A DNA stretch of 64,000 nucleotides from Entomortierella parvispora E1425 (taxonomy: Eukaryota; Fungi; Mortierellomycota). The notes beneath the pieces were generated by a model. That model made no database searches, had not been told where the DNA came from, and was given only the letters and a program-made list of their open reading frames with translations. A program made the translations under genes and the position numbers. Below are positions 2,753-36,103 of this stretch, one piece after another. Within the stretch, counting starts at the first letter, position 1, and the number at the start of each line of letters is the position of its first letter. Location of the stretch: contig BQFW01000008.1 in the NCBI GenBank assembly GCA_020891255.1, positions 1,240,001-1,304,000 of the forward strand. The letters run 5' to 3'.

Positions 2753-3103
2753 CCTTCAGAGACCACCCGCAGAATCGCATATTGAAGCATCACATTTCTA
2801 CGACAAGGCTGGGCAACCAGACCTTGCTCCATAATTGAAATGCTTTAGGGAAAGTCCTCGGACCTCACGACAGAAAGTGTCACCGATAATTCCTTACCGG
2901 TATTGCCTTGTCCATCAAAGATTGATTGTTTCGCACTTGGGCCAAGATTCCACCACTCTGTGGTGGATGAATGCTCCATAACGATCTGATTTCTTGGCTC
3001 GGCGTTTGTCATGGTTCACAGTCATGCGATTGCGGTTGTCATTCTTCATTGAATGATGATTGTAACTCAACGGGGCTCACTCGCGACCGTGGTCTCTTGA
3101 AGG
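2753..3103 (+). ncRNA. RNase MRP RNA
   Basis: CR-I-like GGGAAAGTCCTCGGACCTCACGACAGAAAGTGTCAC (2848-2883) and CR-V-like AACGGGGCTCACTC (3069-3082) closely match the RNase MRP motifs as I recall them (human GGGGAAAGUCCCCGGACCUCGGGCAGAGAGUGCCAC and CACGGGGCUCAUUC). AGTCCT/GGGGCT can form P4. The termini CCTTCAGAGACCAC and GTGGTCTCTTGAAGG are complementary. T-rich tract downstream. Confidence 0.88.
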
Positions 3104-3297: not shown

Positions 3298-3370
3298 CGC
3301 CCAATGTGGGGGTCGAACCCACAACCTTCAGATTAAGAGTCTGACGCTCTACCGATTGAGCTAACCGGGC
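3298..3370 (-). tRNA. tRNA-Lys(CTT)
   Basis: 73-nt cloverleaf GCCCGGTTAGCTCAATCGGTAGAGCGTCAGACT-CTT-AATCTGAAGGTTGTGGGTTCGACCCCCACATTGGGCG. Confidence 0.97.
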
Positions 3371-11200: not shown

Positions 11201-11321
11201 AAGGGGAAGGTGTAACAGGAATACGGTGACATCACGCGATGTGTACCTACAAAAGCTAGAAACTTGCAATATAATAAAACTCACTTCTTGTCTCCACTCC
11301 ACCCTCGATACTCCTATTGCA

Positions 11322-14103
11322 AGCCCGTTATTTCAGCAAGTTGGATCTCCAGCAGGGATATCATCAACTTCAAGTTGCAGAAGAGGACAGACCCAAGACA
11401 GCGTTCTCTACCCGATATGGACACTACGAGTACTGTGTCATGGCTTTTGGTCTTACCAACGCGCCCGCGTCGTTTCAAGCCTTCATGAATACGATTTTCA
11501 GTAAAGAGTTGGATCAGTTCGTTGTTGTCTACCTCGATGACATCCTGATCTACTCCAAGACTTTCGAAGAACACTTGAAGCACATCCGAACAGTGCTATC
11601 AACGCTGCGAAAACATCACCTACATGCCAAGCAAAGCAAATGTGCGTTTGGATTATCCAGCATCACCTTCGTCGGACATGTGATATCCTACGATGGAATT
11701 CAAGTGGATCCAGCCAAGGTCGCAGTTGTCAAGAACTGGCCCACCCCAACCAACGTACAAGAGCTTCGTTCATTCATTGGATTTGTGAACTACCATCGCC
11801 GTCATATTTTCCACCATGCCGAAGTCACTGCTTGTCTTACAGACTTGTTGACCACTGGTCCAGGCCCAAACAAAGGAAAGTTGCGACCCGTGCCTACTTG
11901 GGGCCCAGTTCAACAAGCCGCTTTCGATGGAATCAAAGAACTTCTAGCGACTACCCCTGTATTGTGCCTTGGACACCCCGATGAGCCGTACTATATGGAA
12001 ACCGATGCATCCGACATTGCCACAGGAGGAGTCCTTTATCAGATGCACGAAGGCAAAAGACACCCAGTTGCCTATGAGTCACGAAAACTTAAGCCAGCCG
12101 AGAAGAACTACCCGGTCCATGAGAAGGAACTCCTCGCCATTGTTCACGCATGCAGAGCATGGCGCACGTTTATTCTTGGCGCCCCCGAAAACGTGGTCTA
12201 CACTGACCATGCAAGTCTACGATTTTTGTTGACCCAGCCACACCTGAGCCCGAGAATGACCCGTTGGGTTGAATTTTTGGCCCCCTACAACCTGTCGATC
12301 CAGTATAAGGCAGGAGCCACCAACATCGCTGCAGATGCGCTTTCCAGATTGCAAATCAACAATGTGACAGCAGGACGTCACATCGACACTTGGGATTGGC
12401 CGTTGCTTGTCCCTGCATTTCTGGATGATGGTTCTTTTCCGCCCCATACCGATGGAGACACCAAGAAGAGAGTCCGCAAGGAGGCTCATAACTTCACGAC
12501 TGATGACGACGAATTGCGCTACATGGTTGAAGGAAGAGCAGTTCCCTTCGTTCCGTTTGCAGAGCGCGCAGATCGTCTCATTGAGTTGCACACCGACATT
12601 GGACATCTTGGAGAGTCTGGAACGTTTGATTTGGCCAAGACTCGCATGTGGTGGCCCAGTCTTCGAACAGATATCAAAGCAGTAGTACGTGAATGCAAGC
12701 CGTGTCAATTGGTCAAGCCCGGTGGTGACCGCTCTGTTGCACCGTTGCATCCATTGGCGCCAGCACGTCCGTTTGAGCGCTGGGGAATTGATTTTATTGG
12801 TCGCATGCCAGCCACCAAGAAGGGAAACCGTTGGATCATTACTGCAATCGACCATGCCACGAACTGGCCGATCGCAAGAGCCTTGCCAGAAGCAACCGCC
12901 GACGCCGTTGCTACTTTTCTCTATGAAGAGATCGTCTTACAGTTTGGCTGCCCTAGCGAGATCGTTAGCGACCGAGGAGCCAACTTCATGTCTGACGTTC
13001 TTCAACGCTATTTGGAGAAGCTGCACATCAAACACAAGGCTACGTCTGCTTACCATCCAAGGTCGAATGGAAAGTGTGAGCGTCTCAATGGTGTTATCGG
13101 ACACATGTTGAGCAAGTATGTGGGTACACACATCCACAGCTGGGATCAGTACCTGCACCAGAGTCTGTTCGCTTGTCGCGTACACATCTCTCAGCGAACC
13201 AAGGTCAGCCCATTTCAACTTGTTTATGGACTTGAACCCCGTTTGCCGCAAGATCCAGTACGCCCATTCTTGTTTGATTTTCAAGATCAAGACGATTTCG
13301 CAGAACATCGTCGCAAGACTTTTCGAGAAATCGACGCCCTCCGAGAAAAGCACCTGCAGGCCCAGCAGACCGCCGCAGATGATATGGCCGCACACCATGA
13401 AGAGACACACACGGTCACCGATCATAAGTTCGCAGTTGGTGATTTTGTCCTGGTCAAGAACTTCGGCCGTACGAAGCTTCAACCCCATTTTTATGGCCCG
13501 TTGGAAGTGATCCGTATTACGCCCTTGTCGACTTATCAGCTCCGCTGGGGAGATGGTGAGTTGAAGACGGACTTAGTACACCAAGACCGTCTTAAGCGTG
13601 CTTATCCGCCAGATGAAGCATCTGCACGCCGTGCTTGGGTCACTAAGACAAAGCACACCATGGAGCAAGCCAACGACAACTCTGACGATGGTCTTCCAAT
13701 TGAAAGCCGCACTGAGGAGGAACAGCGCGTGGAGGAGGCCCTCGCTCTTAGAACCGCCAATGAAGATTACCTTGCCCGTCGCGATCAACTTGGCACTTAC
13801 GAACCGCCTATGATGGGTTCCGCCGCTGAAGCTGCCCGCGTGTACAGACAGGCACTTGCTGCTTCTGCCCCGAAGCCTCGTCGCCGTGGCCAACGTACTC
13901 GCGAACCCAGAGTCAATCAGTTGCAGGCAGGCCGAGGACGGCCTGAAGCCTGTGGGGGGAGTGTCGTGAATCAGACTGCTTTTATCCCCGCCAGCTCCGC
14001 GTCTGATCACATGACTTACGATCACCTGACCGCCGACACGCCTGATGAATGGACCCTTGTTGCGCGCCCTCATTGCACTTGTGCCGCGCGTCATCGTCGT
14101 TGA
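11322..14103 (+). CDS. pol: Outer element Pol, 3' part (RT, RNase H, integrase); ORF reads into the 3' LTR
   Basis: RYFSKLDL; VVYLDDILIYS; METDASD; PFERWGIDFIG; IVSDRGANF; GPL motif; stop at 14101-14103 inside the LTR. Confidence 0.93.
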
Positions 14104-14678: not shown

Positions 14679-14750
14679 GGCCGGATGGTTTAGTGGTATA
14701 ATTCTCGCTTAGGGTGCGAGAGGTCCCGGGTTCAATTCCCGGTTCGGCCC
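14679..14750 (+). tRNA. tRNA-Pro(AGG)
   Basis: 72-nt cloverleaf GGCCGGATGGTTTAGTGGTATAATTCTCGCTT-AGG-GTGCGAGAGGTCCCGGGTTCAATTCCCGGTTCGGCCC followed by a T-run. Confidence 0.97.
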
Positions 14751-26546: not shown

Positions 26547-29025
26547 TTATGCAGTCTTTTGCCTCTTGCCTCCCTTGTTGTTCTTGCTTCCTCCGCCTCC
26601 GAAGCTGAACTTCTTCAAGGGGTCGTTCTTCTTTCCTCCAGACTTGTTGGCTCCTTTACCTTGACGTGCTTTCCGGACAGAGTTTTGGGTCTTCTTCTTG
26701 TATGTGATATGTCCCAATCCCTCTGGTGTGGTGTCGCCAATCTTTTGTGTCGACACAGCCTGGACCTTGGGCATCATGTAGTCGGGGACGTGCTTCATGT
26801 GGGGCTGGACGCGAGTGGGGTGGAGCGTCTTGTCGTGGCGCAAAAATTCGAGATCCTTGGGTTTATCTTCGAAATGGGCCTTCAACTTCTCAGAGTTCAA
26901 CATCTCGGCCTTCAACTCCTTCAAGCGCGCCTCACGGATCGAACCACGGGTCACGGCGCGCATGGCATCGTCCATACGGTATCTGAATCCTGCCAATTGT
27001 TGCATTGGAATGGTATAATTGTTTATCGTGCATCCAGCAGCTAAAAAAAAAAGTCGATTGAAGATAATTGTTAGAAAACAATGACACAATAGTAATGGAG
27101 AGTCAAAGTAGAAAAAGTCCAGCTCGATGAATAATTACCTTCTTGCTGTTTAACAACACGGTTGAAGACCTGCTCGTCATCGCCAAACATATGGACCCAG
27201 CCGGAAGAGCCCAAGATCTTGCTGGACTTTACCGACTTCTCCTTCTCCTCGGCCGTCACGACAAAACTCAAACTGGTACCCATCTGACCACCGCGGGCTG
27301 TACGACCAACACGATGTGTGTAAGACTTGGCAGTAGGAGGAAAGTCAAAGTTGACGACCGCAGCCACGTTCACGAAATCAATTCCACGAGACACTCCGTA
27401 TTCCTGATCCTTCTTGGGTCCAGACTTCTTCTTGGATTTGGTAGAGGCGGTGGCAGACTCGGCCTTTGTCTCCAGTTCTGAAGATTTCCTCTTCTTTGAG
27501 TCGACTGCTGCTGAGCCATCAATATCGGCCATGGCGCTCGCTTCGTCCTCGTCATCCTCGCTATCGCTGCCCTTCATCATGGCCTCCATCTCGTCGTCAC
27601 CATCTTCAATGTCCTCTCCTTCAGAACCATCAAACTCCATTTCGATCTCCCCCTCGGGAATCTCGTCAATCTCCTCATCTTCCTCCTCGTCCTCATCCTG
27701 CTCGTCCTCCTTGTCTTCATCCTCTTCATCCTCTGCCTTTTCTTCCTCATCGCCAGCCTCCAATTCCTGTACAGATGCCTCCTCCTCTTCCTTTTCGCCC
27801 TTAAGTCCGCCTTCATCCGTGGCGATCATGTAGTCGTAAACTCCCTTGTTAAACTCCTCGACAATATGCACGCGCGAGTTCAAAGGAAGCTCCGAGTTCA
27901 AGACGACACTGGGGATCGAAAACTGCTCCAAGAACAACTTGAGTCTATAACAACGTTCGATGCTGTTGACGAAAATGATGCACTTTCCCTTCAACAACTT
28001 GAGCTTCAAGAGCACATAGAGGATCAGGTACTTGTCCGTTTCGCTGCAGATCGTGTACAGTTGCTTCAAGTTGTCCCAGGAGGAATCCATGGTCTTGTCC
28101 TCCATCTTCAAAATCGCGGGTGAGCGCAAGACCAACTGTTTGAGCGAGTCGACATCGTCTCCCAAGGTGGCCGACATCAAGAAACTCTGAAAGATCTTTG
28201 GCAAGAAAGTCAACAGCTCCTTGACATCCTCCTGGTAATCGTAGTTGCAGACCAGATCGGCCTCATCAATGACCAAGGTCTGGAAGTGGGTCTTCAAATC
28301 TACGGCGTTCAACTTGAGTTGGGCGAGAATTCTGGAGGGGGTGGCGACAATGATATCAGGCTGGGTGGCGAGGAGAGGCCTAGAGAAACAAAGGATGCCA
28401 TTAGGTTCTATTCCATGAATTCTGTCAAAACGATTAAAAGCATCCGGTCAGGGAGACTTACTGTTGGACCTTGTCGTTTTGTTTTCCTGCAATGTTGAGG
28501 ACGTTGACGGCTCTTCCACAGAAGAGAAGGATGTTGTTGGTGAAAGCAGTAACCTGTCCAGCCAGTTCGACTGTGGGCACGAGAACCAATCCTCGAGTGG
28601 CAGTGGCCTCAGGGGAGTTAGCGGGGAGAGACTAAGAAAGACACAGACAAGATGAGGGGATAGTAATGTTAGCTTCAGGTCCTTTCTCTGGTAGGGGTCC
28701 ATGACAAGATCTGAGACTTCAGGTGTCCACTCATAAAACATACGTCTTTCACAGCGAGGATCTTGTGGATAAGAGGAAGCATGAAGGCGGCAGTCTTTCC
28801 ACTACCGGTTCTGGCCTTGGCAAGGATGTCCTTTCCGGCCAGGGCAAGGGGAATGGACTTTGCCTGGACTGGTGTGGGTTTCGTAAAGTTCATCTTGGCC
28901 AGTCCTCTCAAGAGGCGGTCATCGAGTCCAAGGTCAGCGAATGTGAGGTTGTCATCGACAGTGTTGGGCGTCACCTCCGCGGCCTCGGTCTCGCTAATGT
29001 GTTTTTGGGTCTTCTCCACAGACAT
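26547..29025 (-). CDS. DBP9: DEAD-box RNA helicase Dbp9
   Basis: PTPVQAKSIP..ARTGSGKT; VIDEAD; MSAT; EYGVSRGIDF..YTHRVGRTARGG; C-terminal FRYRMDDAMRAVT..LKAEMLNSEKLKAHFE; acidic insertion in the helicase C domain. Confidence 0.95.
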
Positions 29026-29245
29026 TGGTGGAAGTGTTAAAGTATGAGTGAGAAGAGGGGGGATGGGCAGAGAGCTGAAGGAACGGCATGCGCTGTTCTG
29101 CATGCACTTTAGAGGGAGAAAAAAAAAGAAAAAAAAGAAAAAATCGTGGCTTGTGTTTACTCGCTCACGTGACTCAGGCACGGTTCATTATCGTTTTTTT
29201 GTAAAGTCTTTGACGGTGTAGGACCACGGCATCTACACATACAGC

Positions 29246-30319
<1,074 letters not shown>

Positions 30320-30898
30320 GTCTGTGTGTCTGTCTTCCCGAGGTCGTGCGATGAAGGTCTAAGGGTATGGATGGTCAAAAGATGATGGAGATGAGCGCGC
30401 AACCGCACCGCAGGCAGCCAGCAGGCAGCAGCCCGCGAACGGCGCCCGTGACCGCTCGTCATGTGATTATTGAGGGCAAGGTTTATTCTATGGTGCAAGT
30501 CATCTAGTCCCGACAAATAGTTTGAAAATCTAATATCTTTTGTAAGAGCGGTCTTGAAGCTCAAAATGCTTCATACACTTGAGCGACTGCAGACAATAAA
30601 TAAGACTATGATGTCCTCTTGACAACAGAAGTTGGTGCGCAATGTGACATTGGCAATAAAAGCGTGTGTGTTACAGACCCTTAACTGAGAGTAAATTAAT
30701 CTCACTCTGAAAAAATCAGGAGTGGTGGCTCAGGAGTCAGCCAAATCCATCCACGACCACGTAAAAACGCGTCCTGGCTCCATTCCACTGCTTTCACCCG
30801 TCTCTCATTCATTCATTCATTCAGTCAGTCATACATTGCACGTATTCACTCGCTCGACTCGAACCTCGTCCAAATCAGCAACCATTTATACCATCGCC

Positions 30899-33800
30899 AT
30901 GACATTCTCATTCAACATTGTCGCGCGCCCTGGTACCGACCCACCTCAAAGCTTCACCGAGCTTGTCAAAAGTCGCCGGTCTTCCTGGTCTCTGCCGCCA
31001 TCCGACTTTAGACTTCGTCTGGAAAATGCCGCCAAGGACATCAGACTACAATCTTGTAGAGAACAGACTGAGAAAGCTTTGCTAGCTCTTCGAAGCTGCG
31101 GACTCCGTGTTGATGTCAATCCTGCAGACCCAAACAACTCCTTAGCCCACTTCATAATCCAACATTTTCTGAGGCCAGGAGGGAAGTACGACTTGCACCT
31201 TACAGTCAACAGCACCAACTCGACTATGATCGTCCCCACAAGAACGCAACTCTTGCTTGTCTACCTGGCAGACAGACTCAACTGCAATATCTTTTTGTTT
31301 TCCTGCCGAGGCGCACCGTCTCCCAGGACAGAGGCATCGTCTCCACCCTCAGTCTGTGGAATCTTTCACAGAGTGGATTCCTACCTTAAGTTTTCCGAAT
31401 TTCTGGCCCTCGCTCCAGTGGACACAGTAGACTTGTTGGAGGAACTAGCTGTTGCTCCTGCGAGCGAGTTGGCCTTACCGCAACCAATCGAAGAGATGTC
31501 TTCATCCAATGCTGTTATATTACCCACAAACATGGCAACTTTCCGGGCCAACAAAAGACTACGTATCAAAAGGAGTGGTGCCGACGACACTAGGAAAGCT
31601 GAGTTACTGGAATTTTTGGAAATGTCTTGGTAAGACTGATACTGATGCTGAAGCTTATGCGGGTGATTTCACAAAAAGACTTTTAATGACTGACTGCACG
31701 TTGTTCATGTTTGTATCTCTTAGTATCGAGCATTTGAAGAAAAAAATTGATGACCATATCTGCGAAAGCATCAAGAAAGAGGACCACGAAGGGAAGGAAG
31801 AGTTCAAAACCCGACTTTCCAATCTAAAGAGTCTTCCAAGAGGTCCCCTAAGCGATGCCGCTGCTTTATACATCGAACAAAGGAACCAGTTTTTGACGCG
31901 TATGCAGGTCGTCAGCGACATCACTGCAGCTACCAGCAACAACAATCTTCGTGTTTGGTGCGAGGTTGTTCAAAGACAGTTTGACGAAATCTGGACAAAT
32001 TCCGAGCAGAGTCTGGCAGACAACCAACTTCAGGCTGAAAAAGGAAAGAAGAGAAAGGAATGTGGTCCAGATGAAGGAAGGGAACCTGAGCCCAACACTG
32101 CGGACGATGACGAGAACACTGAGGAATGGCGAACATGTACGGTCACAATGAAGCAAGCCCTTCATCCCGGTCTTTCGAACCACGAAGACTTTAGCAGAAT
32201 TATTAGTCTTCTTCAAGAAGCACAGGATCACTTAACGGACGTTGAACAGTCGCTTTACCTCCTGGCACAAGTTGGAACGATCCTGGTGAGTTGAATCTGG
32301 ATGTCAGAGTCTGACGTTGTAGCACTGTACTACATATATCGAAGTTGATGCTGATACTCTTCATCTGTTATTGAATTGCAGATAGCAGGCGGTGTCTTCT
32401 CAGGGCAACAGGGTACCCTATGCCTGGGCGATATTTTACCATCAGAATGCATCATCCCGCCTGAACAAAGGATACTTAACGTGGCACCAATAGTCGCACT
32501 GCAGAGTGACATCGAAAACAAGAACTCTAGTCTCCATAGCGACATCCGCAACGTTCTATCACAAAACCACCTGAGCCAACTCTACACACAGTTCAAAAAG
32601 GATCCAATAGCTCGCAGAAAAACTTGGCTAGAGAAGGAGTCTGGCAATCATACGAAATGGCTAGAGTTGGCAAAGACCATCGACAGTAAGGTCCCGGGTC
32701 TGATCGCCCCCCACAAAGACCGGTACTCCAAAGTTGTCGAGGCTCATACTCGTCAATGCGCAACCGCCATCAGTAACTTGTGGGAAGGGAAGATTTATGA
32801 AAAAGCTCTTGATTATCTCCTGCGCTATCTTTTATCGGCTTGGTTGGCCCCGGATCGAATGGCGGCACATAAGGAGCGGAAGTCAAGTGCAGTCAAGAAA
32901 AAGAACGAGCAAAAGGCCACCAAAGACTCCAGCTCGGACAAACCAAGTCGATCGCACTGGCGTCACTCCATGAGCAAGCTTCTGAACAAAGTTGCGAAAT
33001 ATTACTCGAGTGGTCGCACCGATCAGCTTCATCACTCTATTGCTCCGCTCAAGGCCCTCTACGATACAAAGCCGCCAGAAGCCGACAAAGAATCCAAAAA
33101 GTCATTTCAGAGGATCTCTGAGGCTGGACTTTCAGCGTCGGATGTTGACCTGGCCTATGATGAGAATATGGAAGACGTGTTCTCGGAGGAGGATTCTTCA
33201 GACGATGATCTCGATATGTGCCTCCTTGAAAGTCAAGCCTTCGCAGACGAACTCGATACGGAGTGGGTCATGGATGTAGATGATGCAAGTCAAAGTAGTC
33301 CGATTACTCTCAACTCTGACCTCAAGGAGAAGGAACCGAGTCGAAAGACCCTTCGGCGTCTGCAGACCGTCGTCAGGACGTTGCTCGAGTCCCCGTTACC
33401 GACCCCAACGTTCAGCATGGATCACATCAAGGACTCGTTATACAAAGGAACCTCCTTTACTGAACGGCAACTCCTTGTCGCACAGAAGATCATTAATTTT
33501 CTGCGACCCTATGTTCCTCGCCGCTGGAGGGATGCTGAAGATGAGGATTATCGTCATCATACCCCACACATTGTCCTGCGCGCTCCAATTGTACTCATCT
33601 CCAACGCGGTGCTGCGATTGTTGGGCCAAACGGAGTTCACCAGACGACTCTCTCCCTCTATCTCCTCGGGAAAGATCCACGGTTTACAGCTGGGCGCTGG
33701 TCATCTCTACCAAGTGCTAAGTGGAGAGAGCGCCGGCCGATATGACCTACATGGTGCAACCGGCATCATGACCAACGTTGCTGACTGCACTGCGTCATTC

Positions 33801-36013
33801 AATGCAAAGCGGGTAGTGTTTGCAAACATTTTCGACATCGAGAAAATTGAAGGCATATGCAAGAGACATGGGTTTACGTTTGGCATGCGGTATGTACACA
33901 CCTCATGCACTGTTATGAGCAACAATTGAGTTTAGACGAGGAAAAAAAGCTGATGTCCGTATCTGAAAAACTGTGTAGGATGACCTTTGTGGACCAGTAT
34001 ACTCTCAACTTATCGGGACCGCAGACGACCAAGTCTGATACCCGTCATCCTGTCCATAGCGCGTTCGAAGAAAGCAAGAAGGCGGGCTCAGGCTTAAAAA
34101 ACGGAAGAAATGCACATTGGCGGAAGGAATTCGAAAGCAGAGGCATGTCCAAGGACGATGTCGAGCATCAGGTTGAACTGGCCACGAAACAAGTTGAGCT
34201 TACGGCAAAGGAACGGGAAGGCCCTCGCAAGGAGCTTGCTGCTCTTCGAAAAGAATGCAACGCGTTGAATAGTGGCATCAGGGCAATCCCTTGGACCATC
34301 AGCAACAATGAGAGCAACATCACCTTGAAAAAACAACAAATGTCTGAACTCAAGGCACAACAGGCAATACTTAGGATCAAGGAAAGGAGGTTTAGTCAGC
34401 TGGATATGGCCTGGGATCGTGCCAAAAAAGAGCTCTACTATTGGAACCGACTGCTGGCCATAGCAAAGCGAAAGGCGCCAAAGGATAACCCGAAGAAGAA
34501 ATTGAAGGCAAGAAAAACGGACCCCTCCCATACCTCTCCTTCTTGGGAATGGCCGCAAGCAGAGGACATCCCGCAACAATTGGACCTCAAGCCAATATTT
34601 GACCAACATCTCAAACCATTACCAGGGTCCAAACGGATCCAGGTTGTGGCGATATGTAGCGAGGACCCTGGCGTACGAGTGATGTCGGAGAACGTCTTTT
34701 TGACAGTTGAGGGAATTGAAAAGTCAATGAACCGTTTCCAAGTTCTTGCAGGTAAGTTCTACAAAATTATTAGCCGTAGTCCAAATGTTTTTGACACATT
34801 GTTAATCCTGATGCTAATAACTATCTTTCATGTCCTGCATGTAGATCTTGATACAACGGAGGAGCTTTTTTTGCCTACTGAACATGCTGCGCCGGAGGAG
34901 CACTATTCTAAGCAAGAGGGGGAACAGGTTGACATTACTACTGAACCGTGGACGAAGGAGAGGCGCAATCAAGCAAAAAAGGCCACGCGAGAGATGAAAC
35001 TCCCAAAGGCTCATCGAATAACAGCACGTCAAGTAGAGGACATTTCTTTTGGCCGCAAACTTCGTCGGAAACGGGAACGCTTGCTCGAGACCGACAAGCA
35101 CAAACAAGCCAAGGCGGATCTGGAGAAGCTTTCGGATCCAGATGCATCTCTTGCTACGGCCTCAACCATCGAATCCGTCCAGATTGCCATCAAGATCCGC
35201 GACTCGGTTGCTGAAAACAACAGCCTACGAGAGCTGAACAGGGATCGTGATCTTGTGAAAATCCGTCGTACCTGTAGGCATCGGACCAAACGGGCCTGGG
35301 CCAAAGTCGCAAGCAATTTGCGAGCAAAATCTGCGGAGTACACCATCAACAAATTGGCCGAAGACAAACGTGGTGAACCAAGCGTGGACACAGCTTCTGG
35401 CTATTGCTCCAATTGTTGTTGCATCGAGATATCCAAGTCCAGCATCGCGGCTCCATATAAGCATCCTACGCATTGTGTCAAGACAACCCCAGTCGTCCGC
35501 CATGTGATATTTATGGGTGCAGCTGGCACTGGTGTTGGATCCAGGATTGGTGGCCATTATCGCCTAGGTGGTAAGAACATCAGGAAGCAACATCGTCAGG
35601 TCGGGACTGTTGTAGTCACGGATGAGTACATGTCAACGCAGCGGTGCTGCTTCTGCTTGGAGAAAACCCACTCGGCGCGTTCAAGGCGAATTGTGGGGTC
35701 AGAAAAGGGCAGGACCATCAACACAGTAACAGTGAACGGATCCAAAGTCTGTTTCAACACGGCATGTCCTGCCTACAAGAACGGCTACACGACTCGGCCG
35801 CGAGACACACAAGCCTGTGTATGCATAGGAATATCAGGATATTCTGCGATCAAGGATGACGACAGGATCCCCTTGGCGCCATTCCGCCCATATCTTGTAC
35901 CAGAAAAAAAATTCGATCAACACCAGCCAGCTTCTGGACCCCACCAAACACGTAGCACAATCCGAGGCGGATCAAGTGCTACTCCTCGAACGAGGGGAAT
36001 AGTTTTATCCTAA
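30899..36013 (+). CDS. Giant Fanzor1-like (TnpB-derived) putative RNA-guided endonuclease; 5 exons, 1,580-aa model
   Basis: Exons 30899-31629, 31724-32285, 32382-33889, 33979-34751 and 34845-36013, joined at GT-AG introns, give one 4,743-nt ORF. RuvC-I SEDPG (D at 34664); relocated RuvC-II TDEY (E at 35624); CCFC...C-x4-C zinc finger; RuvC-III RDTQA (D at 35804); GAAGTGVGSRIGGH motif. Confidence 0.85.
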
Positions 36014-36060
36014 ATTTTTATCCCAAATTACTGAAACCGTAAACATGGAAATTAACCACG
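35880..36060 (+). ncRNA. Candidate Fanzor omegaRNA scaffold overlapping the 3' end of the ORF
   Basis: Hairpins at 35952-35982 and 35983-35996 lie in the low-complexity tail downstream of the last catalytic Asp. This is the expected position for a Fanzor omegaRNA; the boundaries are a guess. Confidence 0.4.
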
Positions 36061-36103
36061 TGATGTTGTCTTTTGGTGACAGACGCTGTACGTAAACGTT
36101 TCC

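Follow-up and report, generated by a model that had tools for sequence, protein, structure and literature searches.

An intact, transcribed DNA transposon of Entomortierella parvispora whose only gene probably encodes a very large Fanzor1-family nuclease

Introduction

Fanzors are the eukaryotic counterparts of the TnpB and Cas12 nucleases and are under development as genome editors. Those studied have ~640–900 residues. A stretch of 64,000 nt from the fungus Entomortierella parvispora E1425 (assembly GCA_020891255.1, contig BQFW01000008.1, positions 1,240,001–1,304,000 of the forward strand; hereafter the window, in whose positions all coordinates are given) raises the question of whether a protein about twice this size belongs to the same group. 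An earlier note, made from the letters of the window, had joined five open reading frame (ORF) fragments at 30899–36013 into a single frame for a giant Fanzor1-like protein. Is this one gene, does its product have the layout of a nuclease, and what carries it?

We estimate at about 80% the probability that a non-autonomous DNA transposon is present in the window as an intact, transcribed copy, and that its sole gene encodes a very large Fanzor1-family nuclease, which would presumably be guided by RNA. The copy is intact and recently mobile, and its gene is transcribed and spliced.

Results

Five exons form one transcribed gene

Joined on the plus strand, the five exons gave 4,743 nt, corresponding to 1,580 codons and a TAA stop, with zero internal stops. 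This agreed with the frame and the four GT-AG introns of 89 to 96 nt proposed from the letters alone, and the suspected CTRAY-like branch sites (CTGAC, CTGAT, CTGAT and CTAAT) were present upstream of the acceptors.

For the transcript and the ends of the element we used two public runs from the same sample, X1, labelled ‘DNA?’, and X2, a DNA run, as well as X3 and X4, two runs from another sample. X1 behaves as RNA. It was taken as such because a neighbouring gene on the minus strand is spliced there too (five CT..AC joints) and because X2 has an unspliced 9.7-kb contig across this region. The X1 contigs had joints at 31628>31723, 32284>32381, 33888>33978 and 34749>34843, every one of them GT..AG, so that exactly the four introns of the earlier note were spliced out. 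The X1 depth was halved in the bins holding the introns. Contigs spanned exons 1-2-3 (31472–33229) and exons 3-4 (33475–34524), and a joint connected exons 4 and 5, showing that all five are part of a single transcript.

Intron 4 was ambiguous from sequence alone, because it is in frame and stop-free, and the predicted ORF 33857–36013 runs straight through it. In addition to being spliced out in X1, it is missing from an E. parvispora gene model (P0001), whose protein lacks exactly the 31 residues encoded by the intron. The ORF track splits one gene into pieces, as the earlier note had suspected.

The C-terminal half has the layout of a Fanzor1 nuclease

The RuvC residues D1163, E1452 and D1512, the IFMG motif and the C-x4-C pair were each found where the earlier note had placed them. 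The RuvC-I Asp and the next Gly were invariant in 21 family sequences. These two, the relocated RuvC-II Glu, the RD of RuvC-III and the four zinc-finger Cys were invariant or nearly so at 20–50% family identity.

When searched against the PDB, a 29-sequence profile covering RuvC-II to RuvC-III matched SpuFz1 with E 7e-6 and PpFz1 with E 1.2e-3, followed by Cas12f, TnpB and Fanzor2 with E 0.1–0.5. The alignment placed the family consensus tDEyrTSktCvfC on LLDEYKTSSVCPRC of SpuFz1, the second Cys pair on GCTNPNC, and pRD on NRD. After applying the 394-residue offset of the maltose-binding protein in the PDB chain, E1452 and D1512 aligned to E541 and D606, which together with D383 form the active site of SpuFz1 (PMC10432273). 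In Fanzors, the canonical RuvC-II Glu is changed to Gly or Pro, and an alternative Glu lies ~45 residues downstream (PMC10530073). The window protein, with its Glu 36 residues downstream of IFMG, matches both this rule and the SpuFz1 alignment, as expected for the Fanzor-type rearrangement that the earlier note had recognized. The Pfam domain PF07282 (Cas12f1-like TNB) was matched by 15 of the 29 family members (best E 3.4e-7) and not by the window sequence.

Two Fanzor signatures have been published: DPG-x(120,280)-E-x6-[CH]-xx-C-x(10,65)-C-x(5,50)-RD(-x5-N) for Fanzor1 (10.1101/2023.08.09.552727) and D-x(125,275)-[TS][TS]-xx-C4-x(5,50)-RD (PMC3627910). Each of their motifs occurs in the window protein in the right sequence (DPG, E-YMSTQR-C-CF-C, C and RD), with ST ahead of the finger; the first spacer is slightly longer than either signature allows.

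A model of window residues 935–1580, built on an alignment of 38 sequences, had a predicted local distance difference test score (pLDDT) of 79.8 and a predicted template modelling score of 0.79. It retained the 31 residues that reading through intron 4 adds, and these formed a low-confidence loop. The model showed the RuvC (RNase H-like) fold common with TnpB and Cas12, the absence of which the earlier note had named as evidence against its reading. Foldseek against the PDB gave SpuFz1 as top match (probability 1.0, E 1.8e-3), followed by PpFz, Cas12o, Cas12b, Cas12X and GtFz. Thus, the profile and structure searches, both proposed in the earlier note, put SpuFz1 first. These results support a C-terminal half that is predicted to be a Fanzor1-type RuvC/zinc-finger nuclease.

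Two further searches gave no usable matches. The single-sequence PDB matches were coiled-coil noise only, and a profile of RuvC-I alone retrieved from the PDB only spermidine synthases, judged spurious.

The gene is carried by a multicopy element with sharp ends

In X2, a contig starting at 30487 had a depth of 342, 4.4 times the depth of the unique flank (77). At least five single-copy X2 contigs with different upstream sequences ended at 30482–30487 or within the first 30 nt of the element, and the depth of these 30 nt was above that of the rest. At the other side, past 36090/36091, contigs of X1, X3 and X4 passed into at least three different sequences. From the depth ratio and the differing flanks at both ends we delimited the element to 30487–36090, with ~4–5 copies. 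Sharp ends, excess depth and multiple flanks are what is expected of a gene carried by a mobile element.

A related copy was found in L001, a DNA record of E. parvispora, with flanking genes unrelated to those in the window. The similarity was colinear from the ATG to 36090, 77 nt beyond the stop. After the stop, 26 nt were diverged, followed by ~50 nt with ~80% identity until ...GACAGACGCTGTA, where the similarity stopped. Upstream of the gene, two blocks were conserved, 30487–30617, which opened with 30 identical bases, and 30724–30750. Other runs with the same species label held 0–3% of the sampled words.

The element has no second gene, and a search for inverted repeats around it found chance-level pairs only. 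The end motifs had no second occurrence within the window. Mobilization must come in trans or follow a route that the sequence does not reveal. That the single protein alone would suffice to move a transposase-less element of 5.6 kb is an unlikely reading.

Several observations concern variation between copies and their ends. In L001, the left-end block lies ~1.7 kb upstream of the ATG, versus 0.28 kb in the window, pointing to ~1.4 kb of extra insert in that copy (L001 5722–7330). After 31318, the multi-copy X2 contig and an X1 RNA contig hold 9 extra in-frame bases (AGGACATTC), which makes the window copy a variant shorter by three codons. In X1, the first ~100 nt of the element (30484–30587) had a depth of ~430, versus 20–70 in the rest of the mRNA and zero at 30588–30795, and the contigs over the left terminus ran upstream into sequences unlike the window. 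This terminus seems to be common to other loci with higher expression. The last 43 nt (36048–36090) were found in X3 and X4 contigs that differed on both sides. The shared 30-nt left and 43-nt right termini hint that partner or ‘ghost’ elements have these ends too, a situation described for SpuFz1 (PMC10432273).

The extra size lies in the WED/REC half and in a front domain

The N-terminal part was modelled on the first 985 residues of P0005, a homolog with 36% identity, using an alignment with the window's three exons and 25 relatives (pLDDT 75.8). In this model, WED and REC domains lay N-terminal of RuvC-I, starting at model residue 397 (window ~378) with the family-wide motif WRTCTxTLKQ. 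This half has ~760 residues, versus ~365 in GtFz1. Disordered acidic/basic loops were located at window residues ~340–380, 595–625 and 690–760, and a coiled coil at ~990–1100. Uncharacterised cluster representatives of 600–1,150 aa in the AlphaFold DB aligned to model residues 232–985 with E 1e-15 to 1e-10, indicating that the region past residue ~240 is largely common to other large proteins. These are probably Mucoromycota Fanzor1-like proteins. Foldseek of the 985-residue model against the PDB gave nothing significant, and the match to GtFz1 came from a Foldseek-independent search only. ESM Atlas feature searches with exons 1 and 3 found just unnamed Mucoromycota clusters or noise. According to the models, the extra size is due to insertions and disordered charged loops in WED/REC plus a front domain of ~240 aa. 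Two basic patches, EKGKKRKE (~aa 349) and KRKAPKDNPKKKLKARK (~aa 1097), look by inspection like nuclear localisation signals.

The first ~240 residues form a conserved alpha/beta domain, kept in a dozen full-length relatives, with the motifs GL.V, LPP.SRLLL..L...L.I.I..FS.R and G.FH.VDSY.G.SEYL.L. Its only named fold matches were OTU-type proteases, all weak: the turnip yellow mosaic virus PRO/DUB (probability 0.85 over 48 residues), the fly OTU protein CG3251 (probability 0.51) and two OTU clusters in the AlphaFold DB. A profile of the domain had no match in Pfam (OTU) or the PDB even at E 10. The window protein has C53, H157 and D160 in the OTU order. In most relatives the Cys is replaced by G, N, F, L or other residues, and 3 of 13 have lost the His, so that neither sequence similarity nor a conserved catalytic Cys/His points to an OTU. 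XPG_N and XPG_I had no match in any window exon or in 13 full-length relatives. ‘OTU-like’ may serve as a lead and not as an assignment. We consider it doubtful that the domain is a diverged OTU-type ubiquitin(-like) protease fused to an active RNA-guided nuclease. If it were, the element would couple DNA targeting to host ubiquitin manipulation, for example by stripping ubiquitin marks at the break or by protecting itself from degradation.

A family of giant proteins in Mortierellaceae

A profile of two relatives, searched against 1.84 billion representative proteins, retrieved 836 proteins at E<=1e-3, of which 124 reached E<=1e-30. This exhaustive search was needed to reach the family, since a word-indexed protein search found two relatives only. 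All named members were from Mortierellaceae (Mortierella alpina, M. antarctica, Mortierella spp., Actinomortierella ambigua, Gryganskiella, Linnemannia and Entomortierella), and all were annotated as ‘hypothetical protein’. The full-length members, from Mortierella, Actinomortierella, Gryganskiella and Entomortierella, had 1,445–1,823 aa, showing that the giant size is a family trait, and aligned end to end with the window protein, with 20–45% identity; a Linnemannia member had 1,042 aa. A literature search found no paper on a Fanzor in Mortierella, and none relevant on a Fanzor with OTU.

Mortierella sp. GBAus27b had at least eight copies with at least 90% protein identity. Three of them, compared at the DNA level (L003, L004 and L005), were 98.5% identical over ~5.45 kb and had an equally sharp right end. 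At this end (~11300–11357 in the three records) there is a perfect hairpin, CCCGTGAGCAATCACGGG, 14 nt ahead of the sharp end ...CTTTCAGCTAGTTA. Upstream, a block of ~950 bp is followed by an insert of ~0.7 kb before the gene, common to two of the three copies and accompanied by copy-specific sequence. A TA duplication would fit the flanks. Such a target duplication, possible for these relatives, was unsupported by the flanks of the window's element family.

The right end and a candidate omegaRNA

A candidate omegaRNA scaffold lies at the right end of the element. Within the last codons, a hairpin at ~35952–35982 had two compensatory changes in a two-sequence alignment with L001. RNA contigs of X1 ran through the right end into different flanks. 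Rfam gave no match in the element. Taken together, the evidence for such an RNA is no more than suggestive.

The block after the stop (GTAAAC...TTAAC...GACAG) resembles an intron in the 3' untranslated region (UTR). This was excluded, as an X1 RNA contig covers 35738–36090 gap-free and the block is unspliced. In relatives, a donor-like GTATGT, GTAAGC or GTATTG follows directly after the annotated stop (L003 11184–11300, L006 from 9465 and L007 from 9341), and in L003 there are an ACTAAC and a ...GACAG ~100 nt after the donor-like site. To judge by these motifs, the relatives may have an intron in the 3' UTR that spans the region presumed to give the omegaRNA.

Features and genomic neighbourhood

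Table 1 Features of the element and its gene, in window positions.
Feature	Position	Strand	Basis and remarks
Whole mobile element, 5,604 bp, single gene, ~4–5 near-identical copies	30487–36090	+	Depth, flanks, homology limits
Left terminal 30 nt (TCTATGGTGCAAGTCATCTAGTCCCGACAA)	30487–30516	+	Identical to L001 5590–5619; unique in window
5' non-coding part (promoter and 5' UTR)	30517–30898	+	Long ORF absent before ATG 30899; RNA contigs from ~30796
Exon 1	30899–31629	+	aa 1–243 and two bases of codon 244; X1 contigs
Conserved N-terminal alpha/beta domain, aa ~40–175	31016–31423	+	Weak OTU-like fold resemblance; C53, H157, D160
Intron 1, 94 nt	31630–31723	+	GT..AG, CTGAC upstream of acceptor; spliced out in X1 contig
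Exon 2	31724–32285	+	Joined frame, X1 contigs
Expanded Fanzor1-type WED/REC half (predicted), aa ~378–1140	32124–34600, introns within span	+	Disordered acidic/basic loops, long coiled coil
Intron 2, 96 nt	32286–32381	+	GT..AG, CTGAT upstream of acceptor; X1
Exon 3	32382–33889	+	Joined frame, X1 contigs
Intron 3, 89 nt	33890–33978	+	GT..AG, CTGAT upstream of acceptor; X1
Exon 4	33979–34751	+	Carries RuvC-I; joined frame, X1 contigs
RuvC-I Asp D1163 (EDPG, in VAICSEDPG)	34664–34666	+	End of model strand E220–229
Intron 4, 93 nt	34752–34844	+	GT..AG, CTAAT; in frame, stop-free; spliced out in X1, missing from P0001
Exon 5	34845–36013	+	RuvC-II, zinc finger, RuvC-III, TAA stop
IFMG, residues 1413–1416	35507–35518	+	Gly at canonical TnpB RuvC-II Glu position; family consensus IGxAGTGVGSRI
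Relocated RuvC-II Glu E1452, in VVTDEYMSTQRCCFC	35624–35626	+	36 residues past G1416; invariant in family alignment
C4 zinc finger (TNB/NUC), C1459-x2-C1462 and C1494-x4-C1499	35645–35767	+	Invariant or nearly so in family
RuvC-III Asp D1512 (RD, in RPRDTQA)	35804–35806	+	Invariant; aligned to SpuFz1 RD with D606
Candidate omegaRNA scaffold region	35880–36090	+	Hairpin, conserved right-end block
Right terminal block, conserved non-coding	36040–36090	+	~80% identical to L001

A (CATT)n/(CAGT)n microsatellite at ~30795–30839 is presumed to be part of the 5' UTR or promoter; read laying passes over it as a repeat. The upstream neighbour is a spliced gene on the minus strand (28378–30260), with its 5' end ~230 nt from the left end of the element. 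Its introns with X1 joints were 28379–28460, 28632–28743, 29364–29516, 29807–29918 and 30018–30259. Elsewhere in the window, Rfam recognized an RNase MRP RNA at 2760–3094 (+, 91 bits) and tRNA genes at 3298–3370 (-) and 14679–14750 (+).

Discussion

Proposed mechanism and alternative explanations

By analogy with SpuFz1, PpFz and TnpB, we infer RNA guiding and DNA cleavage dependent on a short target-adjacent motif (TAM). The 3' end of the gene together with the right end of the element would give rise to an omegaRNA whose guide is taken from the DNA directly beyond 36090. The protein-RNA complex would cleave, with its RuvC domain, matching DNA adjoining the TAM, and the cut would help the element to persist or spread. 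The earlier note had spoken of an unusually large, potentially active eukaryotic OMEGA (obligate mobile element-guided activity) nuclease. The conservation of the catalytic residues supports this view, the RNA guiding being by analogy.

Several points weigh against the reading as a transposon-borne nuclease. Neither a transposase nor terminal inverted repeats, target site duplications or a consistent flank motif were recognized in the element and its flanks. The first spacer, with 286 and 291 residues, is slightly above the limits of the two signatures (280 and 275, respectively). Pfam, NCBIfam and single-sequence PDB searches with the window's own exons gave no match; for Pfam and NCBIfam this holds for the single exons and for exons 4-5 read through intron 4. 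The Foldseek E value was modest (1.8e-3) and the TM-scores were 0.24–0.27, low because just ~250–300 residues superpose. For the folds of WED/REC and the front domain, the modelled sequence was P0005, not the window protein. For the right end (35870–36090), the fold z-score was -0.91 and covariation came from two sequences only.

This last point, which leaves the omegaRNA a candidate, would also fit a Fanzor-derived protein that is no longer an RNA-guided nuclease and has kept its RuvC fold for another role in the element or the host, such as aiding transposition, binding DNA or carrying the front domain. So would the large size and the long disordered loops, unlike those of characterised enzymes, and the final N of RD-x5-N in the strict Fanzor1 signature (10.1101/2023.08.09.552727), an optional position that reads C in the window copy and N in other family members. 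Some purified Fanzors, such as CrFNuc-1, were inactive in published assays (PMC10530073). However, three acidic residues and four zinc ligands have been kept at just 20–30% identity, which is hard to explain without catalysis, and diverged copies have kept the non-coding block at the right end as well as the hairpin in the last codons. We therefore regard a loss of nuclease function as unlikely. Much less probable still is that the host has domesticated a Fanzor as a single-copy gene of its own, a reading that draws on correct splicing and on a transcript level similar to that of neighbouring genes. It is already contradicted by the 4.4-fold DNA depth with at least five left and three right flanks, by the position of the L001 copy between unrelated genes, by the near absence of its words (0–3%) from other runs with the same label, and by the eight or more near-identical copies in another species; all copies would have to be assembly artefacts. 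The least probable explanation is that the exons stem from two or more genes and that the long frame is a chance join, as the annotation of E. parvispora might suggest by dividing the L001 copy into models of 595 and 785 aa. Against it stand the RNA contigs and joint that connect the exons, the single full-length models of ~1,580 aa that align end to end in several species, and the colinear DNA homology with L001 over the whole span. The earlier note had foreseen that transcripts might assign the exons to separate genes; those of X1 show one gene instead.

Significance for Fanzor biology

Taken as a transposon-borne Fanzor1, the window protein represents a whole family of ~1,500–1,800-residue proteins in Mortierellaceae, currently unannotated and mostly escaping Pfam. 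One published survey retained only candidates of 500–1000 aa (10.1101/2023.08.09.552727) and would have missed these giants. The window copy offers a practical starting point for asking what REC expansions and a front domain do for an RNA-guided nuclease in a eukaryotic nucleus, and how a transposase-less element moves without recognised inverted repeats or target duplications. We see its value for Fanzor biology as moderate to high; at this size the protein is ill-suited to editing in its own right.

Comparison with known systems

The best structural and profile match is SpuFz1 of Spizellomyces punctatus (PDB 8GKH, 9CEU–9CEZ). Both have the RuvC fold, a Gly at the canonical RuvC-II site, a relocated Glu in DE(Y)xTSxxCxxC, a C4 finger and the RuvC-III RD, and both are encoded by intron-bearing, single-ORF, transposon-borne elements. 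They differ in protein size (638 aa in SpuFz1 versus 1,580 aa), in the spacer between the RuvC-I Asp and the RuvC-II Glu (158 versus 289 aa) and in the element, which for SpuFz1 is ~2.1 kb with clear inverted repeats, versus 5.6 kb and none found. SpuFz1 is without the front alpha/beta domain, and the identity over the superposed part is 15–16%. PpFz of Parasitella parasitica (PDB 9CF0–9CF3) and the large Mucoromycota Fanzor1-like proteins are several hundred residues shorter, and their matches stop short of the first ~230 residues of the window family. Compared to GtFz1 of Guillardia theta (PDB 9CER), the matching half of the window protein is much longer, with ~590 residues covering what takes 365 in GtFz1, owing to long disordered inserts. 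With ISDra2 TnpB and Cas12f it shares the RuvC and zinc-ribbon (TNB) core, and a guide RNA would likewise be expected at the right end of the element. Its fold, the layout of its active site, its zinc finger and its WED/REC half make the window protein a Fanzor1. It is set apart by a size 1.8–2.5 times that of the studied Fanzors, a much longer insert between RuvC-I and RuvC-II, a conserved front domain, and a 5.6-kb element without recognisable inverted repeats.

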